NCBI GenBank assembly: GCA_013416795.1
Contig: RQSC01000032.1
Span: forward strand, 781,397-845,396
Length of the DNA: 64,000 bases
Direction: 5' to 3'
From: Prasinococcaceae sp. CCMP 1430
Taxonomy: Eukaryota > Plantae > Prasinodermophyta
Positions 23,452 through 37,712 of this stretch are shown here, in pieces. The notes under the pieces are model-generated. The model searched no databases. It had not been told where the DNA came from and worked only from the letters and a program-made list of their open reading frames with translations. A program made the translations under genes and the position numbers. Each line of letters begins with the position of its first letter. The stretch's first letter is position 1.

Positions 23452-24894
23452 TCAGACAGAGGGCACGCGCATCTTTCCCTTGCGCAGCCGTGCTACGTCC
23501 CTGGGGTACACCCAATATAAGAGCCCGTAGAAGCTGAAACACAGGATCCACGGCACCATGCACGCGAGCACGACTGCGTCGCCCAGCGCCCGAGCGTTGT
23601 CGGCCGAGCCTGCGGGTGCGCCCCTGCGCCAGCCGCGCGCCTCGGCCAGCGCGCCCACCCCGACCGAGCTGAAGCTACTAATCAGCCCTTCAAAGCAGCG
23701 GTCGAAGGCGAAAATGGAACAATATCTCTCCGGAGGGACGACGGCGCTCATCATCGAGTTGTTGGTATTGCCGCACCAAGAGCAGCAAAGCGCTGTGAGC
23801 AGCGCGACGCACGCATACGCGGTCACCAGGGGCAATCGGTCGGACGAGGGATGCTCCAGCGGCATACCCAGGCCGCGGAAAATGAGGTACGCACCAGGCA
23901 TACCGAGGAGGACGCTCGTCTGCGCCGTCGCCGTGCGCCCGCCACTTGGCCAGCGAATGTGCCAGAAGTCGCCGACGTACCCACCGATCATGCCCCCAAA
24001 CGCGTTGCCAGCCAGCCACGCGCCCATAATGAAGCCCGCCTCGCCATCAGAGAACCCCGCCGTTTGCAGGTACATCGTCATGAAGAGCAGCGCCTTCCAC
24101 GGGATGCTGCCAACCGCGCCCTGCGCGCACACGACCTGCAGCGTTTGTACTCGCACGACAGCGCTGACGTCATGCACCGTGTTCCTGGAGAGCTTCACCA
24201 GCCAGCGCAGGGTGCCTGCCCACGTTGCATCCTTGTCAGGGAAGACTGTCCCACTCCCGGCCATCCCAGTCGCATTCGCACCGAGCCTCGTGTATCGCAC
24301 ATCGACCGTCTTCGCCAGCGCAATGCCCGCGACGACGCTCGCGCCTCCAACGAGCACGAACGCGACTCGCCAGCCCTCGGCACGCGCGCTGAGCGGCCAC
24401 ATCGGCACGCTCGCGGTGCTCAGCGGCGCCATTACTGCGGCCGCAACGGCGGTGCCACCGTACGAGATGATGTGGAGCCAGCCGAAGCCGCGGCCGCGGC
24501 GCTCATCTGCGAACGAGTCTGCAAGGACCGACTGCGTGGCAGGTATCGCGGCGGCCAGGGCGGCGCCCGTTACGGCACGCAGCACCAGGACGGCGCCAAG
24601 GGTGGGCGAGAGCGCCACGAGAAGGCTGAGCACGCCCCACACGACGCAGGCGCCGCCGACGACTGCGCATCGGTCGCTGCGGTCTGCCACCGCGCCCGCG
24701 GGCAGGCTGGCGAGCGCCTGCAGCGCAGCGCGCGCCGAGGTCAGCAGGCCCAGTTGCGCGGGCGTCGCCCCGAACGACCTGCCGACCGCGGCGTAGCACG
24801 CCGGGAGGAGCGCCTCGTCCGCCCTCTCCAGGAAGGCCACCGCGTAGAAGAGAGCGAGACGCTGCGCCCCGCCGCCGCCGAGCGCGCCCGACAT
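23452..24894 (-). CDS. Major facilitator superfamily transporter (Spinster-like)
   Basis: AFLERADEALLPA, GAVADRSDR motif A, QSVLADSFADERRGRGFG, about 12 TM segments. ATG at 24894. Confidence 0.88.
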   Translation of the reverse strand: MSGALGGGGAQRLALFYAVAFLERADEALLPACYAAVGRSFGATPAQLGLLTSARAALQALASLPAGAVADRSDRCAVVGGACVVWGVLSLLVALSPTLGAVLVLRAVTGAALAAAIPATQSVLADSFADERRGRGFGWLHIISYGGTAVAAAVMAPLSTASVPMWPLSARAEGWRVAFVLVGGASVVAGIALAKTVDVRYTRLGANATGMAGSGTVFPDKDATWAGTLRWLVKLSRNTVHDVSAVVRVQTLQVVCAQGAVGSIPWKALLFMTMYLQTAGFSDGEAGFIMGAWLAGNAFGGMIGGYVGDFWHIRWPSGGRTATAQTSVLLGMPGAYLIFRGLGMPLEHPSSDRLPLVTAYACVALLTALCCSWCGNTNNSMMSAVVPPERYCSIFAFDRCFEGLISSFSSVGVGALAEARGWRRGAPAGSADNARALGDAVVLACMVPWILCFSFYGLLYWVYPRDVARLRKGKMRVPSV

Positions 24895-30287: not shown

Positions 30288-30573
30288 CGCTCACAACGAG
30301 TGCAGCGCACTCAGCCGCTTCGAGGCATCTATATTGTGATCATCGCGGCGACCTATATTGTATTGGGTCGTGACAGCTCTGCGCGCAAACCTACAGTACG
30401 TAAGCAAGTGGTCGAGAACTGTACCTCTGTCTCGGTCCTCCGTGTGCGTGCGGCAGGTGATGCACGACGCCCCTTGTATGTTACAATACTCTATAGACAA
30501 TAAGCTTGTTAGCTGCTGCTCTTCTTCTCATGGCCCTCTCTTCCACCCGCCTCCCTCCTCGCGCGCGGGCCCG

Positions 30574-30662
30574 CATCGCTGTGTCGAGTGCGCGAGCTCA
30601 GGCAGCGACCCCTCACAAAGTTGTGAGTTTGGGCCGTGCCATCATGATCGTCACGTGCGATG
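30574..30662 (-). promoter_or_regulatory. Type II SECIS element in the 3' UTR of the DsbA/FrnE selenoprotein
   Basis: Minus strand: AUGAU core (30645-30641); helix GGCACGGCCC/GGGUCGCUGCC (10 bp, 1 bulge); unpaired AAA; mini-stem CUCACA-ACUU-UGUGAG; 3' UGAG (30600-30597); lower helix GUGACGA/UCGCGCAC. Lies between the stop (30806) and TGTAA (30485-30481). Confidence 0.85.
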
Positions 30663-30805
30663 ACAGCCATTGGCGAGGATTCTGAAGGGGTGAGCCTGGA
30701 CAAGCAACGGCAGCAGCAGCTGGCGCCTCCACTGCGGTCTCAGAAAGCAGCAAGAGTGCGCTTTCGCGCATGCGTCGCGTAGCCTCAACGCGGCGCCTGT
30801 GGCTC

Positions 30806-31759
30806 CTAGATAGAAGGCGCCACGTCAGCCTCTGCTCCCTGTCCCGCCCCATTCGCCGCACGAAGCTCCGCGTCGACCATGGCCAAAAGAAGACGGTAGA
30901 ATTGCTCGTTCGATCCACTGCCTTGGTGCATCACCGCCCCTTCCGAGCCGTCTCCCCACGGTCCACCATTGGTGTATTTCGCAGGCCCGTCGTGGTTGAA
31001 TACAAAGTAGGGGATCGAGTGTATGTGGTGCACATGTATGGTCTCCCCGTACGATTTCCACACCTCGTCTGCCAGTTCGTCAGTATCGAGCCAAGCGTCG
31101 AGCGCGCCAACGTCCAGCCCAGCCTCCTCGGCGGCTTCGAGGATCGTGGAGCGCTCGCTGGCGGACTTCCGCTCCGTGAAGTGGCGCTTGCTCAGCGCAC
31201 TCATGAACTCCTCCTGCTTGCCCTGGCGCGCGGCCCACAAAAGCGTGCGCTGGCTCTCCACTGGCTGCCACTGGGTGTACACATCGTAGTTCAGCGTCGT
31301 CCCTGCCTGCTCAGCAAGCGAGCGCATCTGCGACTCGATTGCGTCGCGAGCGCGCGGGTCGCCGCCGACGTACGTCAAAAGGCTCTCGTGCCACGTGCCG
31401 GGTTTCAGCCGCACCTCGGCGCCCGGCGGCGCGTCGGCGATGAAGCTGTACGGCCGTCGGCGCACGTCGATGGACAGGTACACATCGGGGCACTCCTCAG
31501 CCAGCCGCTCGAGGGCGTGCTGGATGTTGAGCTTCCCGATGTATCCGTGTGGTCACTGTGTGCATGTCACAAAATCGCCGACCAGCCGCACCTCCGTGGC
31601 GCCGCTGTTTGTGGTCGGGGGCGTGCGCGAGCCCGGTAAGAGGTTGCGCACGCGCTGGGTGGCCTGTGGGACGCCTCCACCGGCGGCGGCGGCGCACGCG
31701 GCGTCGCCGGCGCCGTCGGCGGCGGAGTTCGCCGCGACGTGGGGCACGGTCGTGGTCAT
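30806..31759 (-). CDS. FrnE/DsbA-like thioredoxin-fold selenoprotein (in-frame TGA at 31555-31553 read as Sec); 5' end uncertain
   Basis: EVRLVGDFVTCTQ-TGA-PHGYIGKLNIQHALE aligns to FrnE SDVVC-PWCYIGK; RPYSF and cis-Pro SIPYFVF downstream; the two ORF-track ORFs are in the same frame; SECIS downstream. Confidence 0.85.
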
Positions 31760-34700
31760 CAAGAAGGTCCGCGTGTCGCGCCGCGCCGCGCCACGCGGCG
31801 CCAAAAGTGCTCGTGTCGGGCGCCGCCACCGTATGGCGCATGCGCCCGCGCAGCTCCAGGGAACCGCCGCTGACGCGAGCGCGCCTCTGCCTCGAACAAC
31901 AGGACGGGTCCGATGGCCCCCAGATGCCTCTTGACGACGCTGGCGTTTACGCCATCGGCCGCAGCGACGAATGCGACGTGCGCGTCAACCGCGAGGGCGT
32001 CGAGGACGTGCACGTTGAGCTTATTGTCGAGGAGTACGCGCGCGGCGCAATGCTGTGCGCCATGGCGTCGGCTAATCCCGCTAGGCTCAACGACGCCCCC
32101 ATGGAGGGCGAGCAGAAGGTCCGCCTCCGCAACGGCGACACCTTCGAGGTCGGCGGCCGCCTCTTTCGCTACGAGACGGACGACACTGAGGAGCGCATTG
32201 CCGAGGAAGTCCTCGTGGCAAGCGCCAAAAAGAGTGCCAAGAAAGGTGAGCTCGCACCCAGCACCGTCCAAGGAGTGCCGCAGCTCTGCCTTGAAGCGCC
32301 CCATCCCACCCCCCGGTCCCCTCCCCGATCCCTCACTCAGACTTCGCCGGTCCAGCTGAATGTGCTGCGCGTGCTGACTTCCTAGCCTCCGCCAAACAAA
32401 CGCGTCTCGCTCATGCAGCCAAGCGCGTGTCGTTTACTTCGCCGATGTCGCGCAGCCCGCTTGGCGCCCACAACGCCAATCTCGCTGGCCGGCAGCCGAC
32501 GCCCTTCCGCAGTTCTTCGGCCAAGAGCCCGCTCAACGTGAGGAGCCCTATGACGCCGAAGGACAGCAACACCCCGAAGGCAAAGTCTTCAACGCCCAAG
32601 GCGGCCACCCCGAAGGCGGCCACGCCCAAGGCGGCCACGCCCAAGGCAGCCACGCCCAAGGCGGCCACGCCCAAGGCGGCCACGCCCAAGGCGGCCACCC
32701 CGAAGGCGGCCACGCCTAAGATGCCGACCCCCAAGGCGGCCACGCCGAAGGCGGCCACCCCCAAGGCGGCCACTCCGAAGGCGGCAACGCCCAAGAAAGA
32801 CCTAACCGAGACGCTTTTGTCGCCTGTTGCAGCTGTCGAAGGCGCCAACACGGCTATCTTCGAGGCTGACTATGGTGCGGATGATTTCACCAATGCTGTC
32901 TTCCCATCGATCAAGGCGGCCACCCCTAAGGTCACCACGTCCAAGGCGGCCACCCCGAAGGCGACCATCCCGAAGGCGACCACCCCGAAGGCGGCCACGC
33001 CCAAGGCGGCCACGCCCAAGGCGGCCACCCCCAAGGCGGCCACCCCCAAGGCGGCCACGCCCAAGGCGGCCACGCCTAAGATGCCGACCCCCAAGGCGGC
33101 CACCCCCAAGGCGGCCACCCCCAAGGCGGCCACCCCCAAGGCGGCCACCCCCAAGGCGGCCACGCCCAAGGCGGCCACGCCCAAGGCGGCCACCCCGAAG
33201 GCGGCCACGCCTAAGATGCCGACCCCCAAGGCGGCCACTCCGAAGGCGGCCACGCCCAAGGCGGCCACCCCGAAGGCCGCCACGCCCAAGGCGGCCACCC
33301 TCAAGGCGGCCACGCCCAAGGCGGCCACGCCCAAGGCGGCCACGCCCAAGGCGGCCACCCCGAAGGCGGCCACCCCGAAGGCGGCCACCCCGAAGGCGGC
33401 AACCCCGAAAGCAGCCACGCCTAAGGCAGTGTCCCCGAGGAGCCGCACGCCCAAGGCGGGGACGCCGACAGAGGTCGCTGTAATTGCGAATCTCTCCCCG
33501 GTGGTGCTGAATGACGTTGTCGAGGAGGGCTGCGAGGCCATCGTTGAGGACGTAGTCGACGTTGAGCAGGCGATGCCGGCCGCCTGCACGCTGGCTACCA
33601 GTGCAACAACCATGCGCTCACTGTCCACGTCTCTGCGCGCGGAGATCAATGCCAAGGGTGCAACGCCCACGCGGTCGACCCCCAAGGCTGCCACACCGAA
33701 GGCTGCTACCCCCAAGATGGCCACTCCGAAGACGTCAGCCAAGAAGGCTGCCGCTACGCCAAAGTCTGCGGCTGTGACCCCCGAGATCGCAGGTCTTCTC
33801 GACTCGCTGGTGGCCAGTGCGTCCAAAACCGGGCCGAGGAGCGCCGGTCGCCGTCGCAGCAGTGTCGGCAAGTTTGCGCTCGCCTCGCCCGTGTCGGCGA
33901 AGAAGCGGTCACTCGAGGACGAAGACATCGAGATGATGGAGGTGTCGCCGCCCGCGAAGCAGGCCAAGCAGGTGCAGCCCGAGGACGGAGCGGAGTCCGA
34001 GGAGGAGGTCGCTGAAGAGGACGCTGCCGCTCCCAGCCCAGTCGAGTTTGAGGTGCCCGCGTTTGAGGACGCTGCCGACGATGCGGCCGAGGATGCTTGC
34101 GAGGACGTTGAGGAGGCCGACGCCGATGTCAGCGCCGAGGTCGACGAGGCAGTAGTTAAGCCGGTCGGAGCAGTGGTCCGCATGCCGCGGGACCCGCGCG
34201 CGCTTCTGCACGCAGGTCTGCACAAGTCCAGCATGAACCGCGCCAACATGCGCCTCAAGGGCATGGTGCAAGATCTGGAGTCGAGGCTCGATGCAGCGCT
34301 CACTGCGCTTCAGCATTCCGAGAACGCGCGCGAGCGCGACGCGCGTCGCCTCGCCAAGGCGGCATCCAATGTCGCGCAGCTGCGCGCTGCCAACGCATCC
34401 CTGGAGAAGAAGCTCGCCAAGGCGAAGGCCGACTCAATCATCACCAAAAAGATTGCCCAGTACAAGGCCGACATGCAGATGAAGGCGATGATGGCAGCCC
34501 CCGAGATTGCCACAGCGCCCGCAGTTGAGCCTGCGGCCGTGACCGAGGAGGTGATCGTCGAGGAGGTCGTCGAAGAGGAGCCCGTCGCTGCCGCCGCCGA
34601 GGAGACCGATGAGGTGGTCGCCGAGGAAGTGGTCGCCGAGGAGGCCGAGGACACCGATGAGGTGGTCGCCGAGGAGGCCGAGGACGTCGAGGAGGCGGTC

Positions 34701-35402
34701 GCCGAGGAGGTCGACGAGGTCGAAGAGGCGGTCGCTGAGGAGGCGGTCGCCGAAGAGGCTGAGGAGGCGATTGTCGAAGTGGCGGTCGCCGAGGAGGATG
34801 AAGAGACGGCAGCTGAGGAGGAGATCGCCGAAGAGGCGATCGCCGACGAGCCCGAGCCCGAGGCCATGGATATTTCCATGGAGGACGTCGAGGACGTCGA
34901 GGAGTCTGAGGATGATGAGGTGGTGGTGAACAAGACCCCCACTCCCGCCAAGATCGCGCAGGAGATTGTCGTCCTCGAAGAATCAGACAACGACGCAGCG
35001 AACGATCAGGACGAGGTCGCCGACTCTGAGCCGCTCGAGGAGCAGGCTGAGGCTGAGGTCGAGACTGCTGTTGTTCAGAGCACGCCAGAGATCGTCGAGG
35101 TGGTCGCGGAGGCCGAGGCGGAAGGGGAAGGCGAAGAGGAGACTCCGTGCCTGGTCTGTGGCTCGTGCGACGACTCAGAGGAGATCATGCTTCTGTGCGA
35201 CGGCTGCGATAAAGCCTGCCATCTCTCCTGCGCGGGCTACAAGCGCGCACCCAAGGGCGACTGGTTCTGCATCGAGTGCAAGCCCACCAAGCGGGGCCTC
35301 GACGCCGCCGCCGCGTGGCGCAAGGCCAACGGCAAGGAAAACAACGCCGCGGAGGCCAACGCGGCGCCTGTAGCAAGGCGCTCTACGCGAAGCCGCCGGT
35401 AG
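31684..35402 (+). CDS. Ki-67-like protein: FHA, RVSF PP1 motif, TPK repeats, coiled coil, acidic region, PHD finger; exons ..31766, 31903-32245, 32419-35402; start codon not found
   Basis: Spliced [10 protein letters not shown]|[46 protein letters not shown] closely parallels the Ki-67 FHA; AKK|AKRVSF; C-terminal C4HC3 PHD ([33 protein letters not shown]). Confidence 0.85.
32553..33455 (+). repeat. 15-bp coding tandem repeat (AAGGCGGCCACSCCS-like, encoding AATPK) in two blocks
   Basis: About 16 TPK units at 32553-32796 and about 32 at 32914-33455. The variant MPTPK unit recurs with identical DNA three times. Confidence 0.95.
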
Positions 35403-36806: not shown

Positions 36807-37712
36807 ATGCCGCGCAAGAGCGCGCGTGCGCAAAAGGCGACGGCCGCGTCGGTCGTCACCGATGAGATGCGCGCGATGGCCGCGCTCGCGAGGCTCGACG
36901 CGCTCAACAGGGACGATGGGTGCGTGTGCGCCGACCGGGATGCCCGCCCGCCCGCTCGCGTGACCGCGCGCCCGCCCCGCGCGTGCGCCGCCGCCGGGAG
37001 GCTGGGCACGTTTGGCGCGTCCAAGCGCGCTGACACCCCAGCTATGCTGCGTGGGCTCTGTTCCCAACGGGGTGCTCGCGCAAACTCGGTCGTGTGCGCG
37101 TGCGCACTCGCGCCCCCCCCCTGTGCCCGTGCGCGCACGCATTCAGTGGCGCTGCCGACGCCGAGGCCGAGGCGGAAGGCTCAGACGATGAATACGTCTT
37201 CGAAGGCGAGGAGGTCGACGAGGACGGCGACCTTGTGGAGAAGTCCTCGCGCAAGAAGGGCAAGGCCAAGGCCAGGGGGGGGGCGAAGGGACGCGGCAAG
37301 AAGGCGGTCGCTGCGGGTGTGGGCCCGCGGCGCACGAAGAAAACGCGCGCGGCTCGTGGCGCAGCCGCGTCCGCTGCGGCGCGTGCAGGACTCGCCTCGC
37401 TCCTGGAGGAGGCGCCAGGTACGTGCGCCCCCGATCGCGAGACCTCGCGCGCGGCGAGCGCGCGTGTACGTACTGACGCAGGCGCTCTTGGTCCTCCACG
37501 CGAGCTCAGAGGCCGCACGCCGCGCGTACCTGTTCGCGTCGGCCACGCCGAGCACGTATCCGTCCCGGCGCTTCTGCGACCTTAGCGGCAACGAGGCGAA
37601 GTACGTCGACCCCAACACGCGCATGCGGTACGCTGGGAGGAAGGAGTTCCGCATGATCCAGGAAATGCCGGCCCTGGCAGTGCAGGCGAGGACGCTCCGC
37701 AACGTCAGGTAG
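36807..37712 (+). CDS. Chromatin-remodeller subunit with SWC6/ZNHIT1-like N-terminus and YL1_C (Ies6-like) C-terminus, 3 exons (36807-36919, 37147-37418, 37510-37712)
   Basis: AALARLDALNRDDG, acidic stretch, RRTKKTRA, LASLLEEA (SWC6-like); then PSRRFCDLSGNEAKYVDPNTRMRYA..EFRMIQEMP (YL1_C). Confidence 0.75.
   Translation: MPRKSARAQKATAASVVTDEMRAMAALARLDALNRDDGCVCADRDARPPARVTARPPRACAAAGRLGTFGASKRADTPAMLRGLCSQRGARANSVVCACALAPPPCARARTHSVALPTPRPRRKAQTMNTSSKARRSTRTATLWRSPRARRARPRPGGGRRDAARRRSLRVWARGARRKRARLVAQPRPLRRVQDSPRSWRRRQVRAPPIARPRARRARVYVLTQALLVLHASSEAARRAYLFASATPSTYPSRRFCDLSGNEAKYVDPNTRMRYAGRKEFRMIQEMPALAVQARTLRNVR

Follow-up and report, generated by a model that had tools for sequence, protein, structure and literature searches.

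An in-frame UGA very probably read as selenocysteine in a DsbA/FrnE-like gene of Prasinococcaceae sp. CCMP 1430

Background

Selenocysteine-containing relatives of the disulfide oxidoreductase DsbA have a history that runs from bacteria to marine algae. In the accessible text of PMC2874816, selenoprotein DsbA was found in bacteria, in marine communities and in the picoeukaryote Micromonas, with M. pusilla being the only member of the Viridiplantae given a Sec-DsbA. Sec-containing FrnE is reported from the Mamiellophyceae and Mesostigma in the consulted portion of PMC6627142, and that of PMC7539508 names DSBA as one of the algal selenoproteins with the widest distribution. The statement, made before our analysis from the sequence alone, that DsbA-like selenoproteins are known from marine algae is thus borne out by all three. 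Outside the algae, the redox-motif table of PMC1088965 shows the bacterial DsbA-like selenoproteins as UxxC, and the DsbA selenoproteins of Ciona and amphioxus are likewise described as UxxC in the text of PMC2874816 that was available. The texts of the Mamiellophyceae papers, as far as they could be searched, write the site as U(C)XXC.

Here we describe a locus in a window of 64,000 nucleotides (the whole stretch of DNA analysed; all coordinates are window positions) from Prasinococcaceae sp. CCMP 1430. Its gene resembles the Mamiellophyceae Sec-DsbA/FrnE in fold family, in having Sec at the active site and in carrying a eukaryotic SECIS in the 3' UTR, and very probably belongs to the same orthologous group; the site in the window gene and its relatives, however, is U-P-H-G with a Cys at -3. 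A GST-DsbA selenoprotein cluster, as described for some Mamiellales, was sought beside the window gene and not seen. With the bacterial (COG2761, marine metagenome), Ciona and amphioxus DsbA selenoproteins it shares the DsbA-like fold and Sec in place of the upstream nucleophilic Cys, but unlike these UxxC forms it has Gly at +3 and the partner Cys at -3 (CxxU-PHG), and whereas the bacterial forms have a bacterial SECIS inside the coding sequence, the window gene has a eukaryotic one in the 3' UTR.

FrnE of D. radiodurans, a cytosolic disulfide isomerase/oxidoreductase, has a Cys-containing C-terminal tail motif. A C239S mutant of FrnE is among the PDB entries by its entry title, and unlike FrnE, the window protein is free of Cys over its last ~60 residues. 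The helical insertion, the cis-Pro loop and the lack of a clear signal peptide are common to FrnE (5CNW/5XWH) and the window protein, which has Sec and Gly instead of the Cys-x-x-Cys site and only about 20% identity. A further likeness is to kappa-class GST and HCCA isomerase, which have a DsbA-like architecture with a single catalytic residue, not CxxC, at the first-Cys position; these are glutathione-dependent with Ser or no redox residue, whereas the window protein has Sec, and their fold matches are weaker (1r4w, 3rpn, 2imd; E about 1e-2).

Results

Gene model and neighbourhood

Two open reading frames on the minus strand, 31553-31804 and 30806-31483, share a frame with a TGA at 31555-31553 between them, exactly as the sequence-only reading had placed them. 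The N-terminal coding part (31556..31759, minus strand) runs for 68 codons, starting at the first ATG that is in frame in the genome (31759-31757) and reaching up to the Sec codon, and includes a conserved NLLPGS motif and a beta1-like V-R-L-V-G-D-F-V stretch. The in-frame TGA (31553..31555, minus strand), as the selenocysteine codon, would encode residue 69 in the model that starts at ATG 31759 and yields 317 aa, and a Cys codon, TGC, lies at position -3 from it (31562..31564, minus strand), giving a C-x-x-U motif. The C-terminal coding part (30809..31552, minus strand), 248 codons for a DsbA/FrnE-like thioredoxin fold with a helical insertion, opens with the P-H-G-Y-I-G-K helix start, contains the cis-Pro loop I-H-S-I-P-Y-F-V-F and ends at a TAG stop codon (30806..30808, minus strand). 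Over the site the minus-strand DNA reads ACG GAG GTG CGG CTG GTC GGC GAT TTT GTG ACA TGC ACA and continues CAG TGA CCA CAC GGA TAC ATC GGG AAG, which translates as TEVRLVGDFVTCTQ-(TGA)-PHGYIGK (context GDFVTC-T-Q-U-P-H-G-YIGK); the read-through peptide is ...VRLVGDFVTCTQ-U-PHGYIGKLN.... The 3' UTR of about 334 nt (30472..30805, minus strand) is drawn from an RNA contig of run X1, ends ~9 nt past a TGTAA signal (30485-30481, minus strand) and contains a form 2 (type II) SECIS element (30588..30654, minus strand).

The neighbouring gene is divergent (32427-35402, plus strand, with an ATG at about 31925, plus strand), and the two start codons lie only about 165 nt apart; its product has an FHA-like start, about 50 KAATP/TPK repeats and then a C-terminal PHD-like CxxC cluster. 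The 64-kb window contains no tRNA genes.

Family and fold

The upstream ORF piece by itself has no family match. What follows the TGA matches Pfam PF01323 (DSBA) with an E-value of 2.5e-11 and 44.2 bits against a cutoff of 25.6, and the match begins at profile position 11, directly past the place of the first active-site Cys. Among solved structures, D. radiodurans FrnE (PDB 5CNW, E 2.7e-4) is the closest in sequence. An AF2 model of the downstream piece, which contains neither beta1 nor the Sec, reached only a moderate pLDDT of 68, owing to the absence of beta1 and the active site; a Foldseek search with this model again ranked FrnE first (probability 1.00, E 2e-6, TM about 0.4), followed by SCO1869, YjbH, kappa GST and HCCA isomerase. 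The cis-Pro loop IHSIPYFVF aligns to IRSIPYFVF of a distant alphaproteobacterial relative described below. By profile and by fold similarity, then, the gene is a member of the DsbA/FrnE-like thioredoxin-fold family (PF01323, COG2761).

Conservation of the UGA and its surroundings

A search of a 5.8-billion-protein collection returned 35 homologues, all of which (35/35) are N-terminally truncated and begin at or after the YIGK motif, as happens when gene callers stop at a TGA. The expectation that standard annotation would truncate this gene therefore holds for every database homologue, each being without the N-terminus and the active site. We then drew about 70 further loci from metagenomes and metatranscriptomes by means of two far-downstream peptides, QWQPVDSQR and IHSIPYFVF; these are distant from the site, so the set is unbiased with regard to the codon found there. 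Every locus that covers the N-terminal region carries TGA, in the context D[FWMY][VI]TC[ST][QT]-TGA-PHG[YF][IV]GK, and none carries a Cys codon. In the DNA of homologues from the protein collection, L001 reads GDFVTCTQ-TGA-PHGYIGKLN and differs from the window at eight synonymous third bases within 18 codons, L004 reads ADFVTCSQ-TGA-PHGYIGK, and in L002, which encodes an identical peptide, a GT..AG intron of 94 nt (L002:259-352) splits the His codon directly past the TGA. An anchor that is agnostic of what lies upstream, G[YF][IV]GK, gave 59 distinct contexts, 57 of them with U-P-H before the anchor and the other 2 being intron-interrupted genomic loci.

At the 15 flanking positions from -7 to +7 of the TGA the amino acids are invariant or nearly so, while each is written with 2-9 codons, and upstream of the site no relative has its frame closed before an ATG or the contig end is reached; a second conserved motif (NLLPGS / VDNLLAA, (V/L)(D/x)NLL) lies there. 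Conserved residues with synonymous codon variation on both sides of the UGA point to purifying selection on a protein translated across it, and the question raised beforehand, whether orthologues have Cys or Sec at this position, is answered by TGA in all covering loci. An exhaustive comparison of the profile with 1.84 billion representatives yielded 1308 matches, and among the best 150 of these, all from this family or fragments of it, no Cys form of the site was found. One apparent Cys form, P0041, was rejected: an intron-blind gene caller had read through a 63-nt GT..AG intron that splits the codon as T|GA.

The relatives differ at their N-termini. One subclade (L007, L009, L011, L012 and L030) starts with MGN[KR]TS / MGNRAL, resembling an N-myristoylation signal, and others have MRKGFLLGGS or hydrophobic or Ala/Thr-rich leaders, so that localisation, judged from these varied N-termini, may differ between lineages.

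Transcripts across the UGA and the 5' end

Introns at or beside the codon do occur in relatives (L002, L076, L036, L044), and together with a departure of one RNA contig from the genome at 31702 they could suggest that the TGA is removed from the mRNA by an intron or that it is an assembly or sequencing artefact. In the relatives, however, splicing either restores T|GA or leaves the TGA intact: the 63-nt GT..AG intron at L076:551-613 (also in L077) splits the Sec codon as T|GA, and the introns of L036 and L044 lie immediately before the Gln codon. For the window itself we compared the reads of RNA runs over 30300-32100. Run X1, from the window's own organism and apparently a transcriptome, gave a contig of 1318 nt that agrees with the genome over 30472-31702 without a single difference, gap or joint; a contig of run X2 covers 31394-31629 and one of run X3, a metatranscriptome, covers 31409-31559, both colinear across the TGA. 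Since the contigs of all three runs cross the TGA colinearly, it is not spliced out, and since the same TGA stands in an independent metagenome scaffold from Tara Oceans (L003), which shares about 99% identity with the window across 968 nt, it is not a sequencing error. The two doubts that had been attached to the codon from the start, error and splicing, are thereby settled, and as an account of the TGA the artefact or intron reading, to which we leave practically no probability, is already refuted.

The X1 contig also carries the coding sequence from 31702 downwards and the SECIS on one RNA and ends 9 nt beyond the TGTAA, where a poly(A) site would be expected. Because it joins coding sequence, SECIS and the poly(A)-proximal end, the SECIS lies inside the 3' UTR of the transcript, 152 nt past the TAG stop and about 900 nt past the UGA; the presence of the element in the mRNA, which the sequence-only reading had wanted confirmed by RNA data, follows from a single contig that covers UGA and SECIS together without joints.

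At 31702 (minus strand) the X1 contig diverges from the genome and continues for 87 nt, which were searched for in the window and are absent from it. In reverse complement this extension contains GCCGCC-ATG-GCC GCG CGT GCT, a Kozak-like start that is in frame and would give MAARA|AACAAAAGGG..., and the junction (31704-31703) lacks an AG acceptor. The contig may be a chimera made where GCC is repeated, or the extension may reflect a strain difference or come from a distant 5' exon. Because the contig leaves the genome at 31702, the 5' end of the gene model is tentative, and the protein would have either 317 aa (ATG 31759) or about 303 aa; the Sec claim is unaffected by this choice.

The SECIS element

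In eukaryotes, a type II SECIS consists of AUGA-U, a helix, an unpaired AAA, a mini-stem and a closing UGA. In the window, helix 1 is followed by the core AUGA at 30645-30642 and U at 30641 (minus strand); helix 2 has 10 bp (30640-30631 with 30611-30601) with a single bulged C at 30605; the apex is formed by the unpaired AAA (30630-30628), a 6-bp mini-stem (30627-22/30617-12) and an ACUU loop; and the closing UGA is at 30600-30598. An unconstrained minimum free energy fold of 30580-30665 gave -32.5 kcal/mol (z -2.58; 1 of 200 shuffles was as stable) with the same layout. All parts that had been picked out from the sequence (AUGA-U, the 10-bp helix, AAA, the 6-bp mini-stem, UGA and the TGTAA signal) are present, those of the SECIS are reproduced by the fold, and their assignment to type II agrees with its form-2 architecture.

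We formulated a strict SECIS rule (ATGA and one further nt, 9 bp or more with a single irregularity allowed, AA 10-14 nt past the core, then NGA), which found 15 sense-strand matches in the loci, all 3' of the coding sequence, and 1 antisense match, against 0.2 in shuffles of the same 120 kb. On both strands of the 64-kb window the rule matches twice, and one of the two is the proposed SECIS; counted in this way, a match on the right strand would fall in the 334-nt UTR by chance only a few times in a thousand. The second match (37188-37230, plus strand) falls within acidic coding sequence (…DDEYVFEGEEVDEDGD…) of a neighbour gene and was rejected as a probable chance match.

Sixteen candidate SECIS elements were aligned (A3), and a covariance model (R1) was built from the alignment. 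RNAalifold recovered the five basal pairs of helix 2 across the 16 elements, four of the five with compensatory double changes. In the alignment fitted to the model, which leans toward the model structure, 84% of the cells are paired as against 41-50% with slid partners; 8 of the 10 pairs are changed on both sides, and covariation is 0.47 compared with 0.08-0.15 in the slid controls. Applied to the loci, the family covariance model yields 28 matches, every one of them sense-strand and 3' of the coding sequence, some in loci outside the seed, and it scores the window SECIS at 35 bits. Elsewhere in the window it has one weak match (23678-23765, minus strand; 14.9 bits, E 0.46), ATGA-TGAGCGCCGTCG…CGACCGCTGCTT-TGA, which is without a clear AA motif and is probably a chance match.

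With the curated Rfam model SECIS_1 (RF00031) the element aligns from end to end (1-64/64) but scores 18.6 bits, short of the 35 required for gathering, and at the gathering threshold Rfam has no match across the whole window. In this one respect the outcome departs from what had been expected at the outset, namely a SECIS that scores above threshold. The 20 orthologous loci compared with Rfam behave likewise, with one sub-threshold SECIS_1 match at 22.9 bits, the best among them, and none at the gathering score. Because orthologous SECIS elements also fall below that score, the Rfam model, which is largely metazoan, is insensitive for this clade; this removes the below-threshold objection but adds no support.

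Is the TGA a true stop after all? Automatic gene callers annotate it so, all database homologues start past it, and with the low Rfam score this would speak for a pseudogene or for two separate ORFs, a short upstream peptide and a truncated DsbA-like protein made from an internal start, beside a coincidental hairpin. We regard this as extremely improbable, because such a truncated protein would miss both beta1 and the active-site nucleophile, about 60 diverged lineages keep the upstream frame open and conserve its protein sequence while the codons vary synonymously, the TGA is invariant, unlike a random stop, and the SECIS is conserved with covariation in the orthologues. That the UGA is read through as something other than Sec, either by near-cognate Trp, Cys or Arg or through a lineage-wide reassignment, we hold to be very improbable: TGA is the ordinary stop of many orthologues' own coding sequences, the SECIS accompanies the gene in many lineages, the site is a redox-active Cys position, the classic Sec context, and published surveys, in the portions of their text that could be consulted, class the family as Sec-containing (PMC7539508, PMC6627142, PMC2874816). 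With a probability of about 0.93, then, we read the region as a single unspliced minus-strand gene for a DsbA/FrnE-like selenoprotein of ~300-317 aa, whose UGA is recoded via a 3'-UTR SECIS.

The active site

A scan of bacterial and archaeal genomes found only one prokaryotic relative, a distant one in an alphaproteobacterial MAG (L078), whose protein starts MILEIWSDPS-C-P-W-C-W-I-G-K-R; it is useful as a CPWC reference and says nothing about origin. A local ungapped alignment places P-H-G-Y-I-G-K of the window on P-W-C-W-I-G-K of L078, so that U corresponds to the first (nucleophilic) Cys, P to P and Gly to the second Cys. This alignment to a CPWC-WIGK protein and the start of the Pfam match at profile position 11 both uphold the earlier placement of U at the first Cys of the CPWC motif. 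The C-P-x-C dithiol at the N-terminus of helix alpha1 is absent, the site being U-P-H-G. The active site of E. coli DsbA is C-P-H-C, which the U-P-H-G of the window gene echoes.

Gly at +3 is found in 100% of the relatives. A Cys at -3 (CxxU), which the sequence-only reading had missed, is invariant in all contigs without an intron there, with CTQ, CSQ or CTT before the U. A conserved Asp lies 7 residues before the nucleophile as against 3 in L078, which places this Cys within an insertion of ~4 residues; it is likely to be the resolving cysteine. No Cys-containing orthologue was found among about 60 lineages. We tentatively suggest, at somewhat less than even odds, that the marine-protist clade is a distinct, obligately Sec-dependent branch of DsbA/FrnE whose redox pair has been rebuilt, with Sec as the nucleophile, Gly where the canonical resolving Cys would be and a new resolving Cys at -3.

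Discussion

The gene organisation suggests how the protein may be made and how it may work. The UGA at 31555-31553 would be recoded as selenocysteine by the form-2 SECIS at 30654-30588, presumably along the standard eukaryotic route of SBP2, eEFSec and tRNA-Sec; Sec insertion at this codon is what we infer from the sequence evidence above. The Sec would occupy the position of the N-terminal nucleophilic Cys of C-P-x-C, at the start of helix alpha1, with the second Cys replaced by Gly, and could attack substrate disulfides or sulfenic species. The Cys at -3 would then most likely resolve the mixed intermediate as an intramolecular selenenylsulfide, to be reduced in turn by thioredoxin or glutathione, and the enzyme would be a thiol-disulfide oxidoreductase or isomerase. 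As an alternative to resolution by this Cys, the mechanism could be monothiol and glutathione-dependent, of the kappa-GST type. Because the N-terminus is without a clear signal peptide, a cytosolic role is the most likely one, and the protein is probably cytosolic in the manner of FrnE.

How new is this? The gene had been announced from its sequence as a hidden selenoprotein, and hidden it is from automatic gene callers, but the family has already been published for this algal lineage (PMC2874816, PMC6627142 and PMC7539508). What may be new is the explicit CxxU-PHG geometry together with the complete absence of Cys orthologues; no description of this geometry was found in the searchable running text of the literature.

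The locus carries two lessons for annotation. Automatic gene calling systematically truncates the family, as the 35 database homologues without N-terminus and active site show, and because Rfam SECIS_1 misses nearly all the SECIS elements of this algal and protist family, screens based on Rfam under-call protist selenoproteins. For the biology of the family, a CxxU-PHG site kept throughout without Cys orthologues would make a good case study for enzymes that are unable to swap Sec for Cys, and for the organism, the gene enlarges the large selenoproteome of marine picoalgae, by which their redox biology is tied to the availability of selenium in the ocean.
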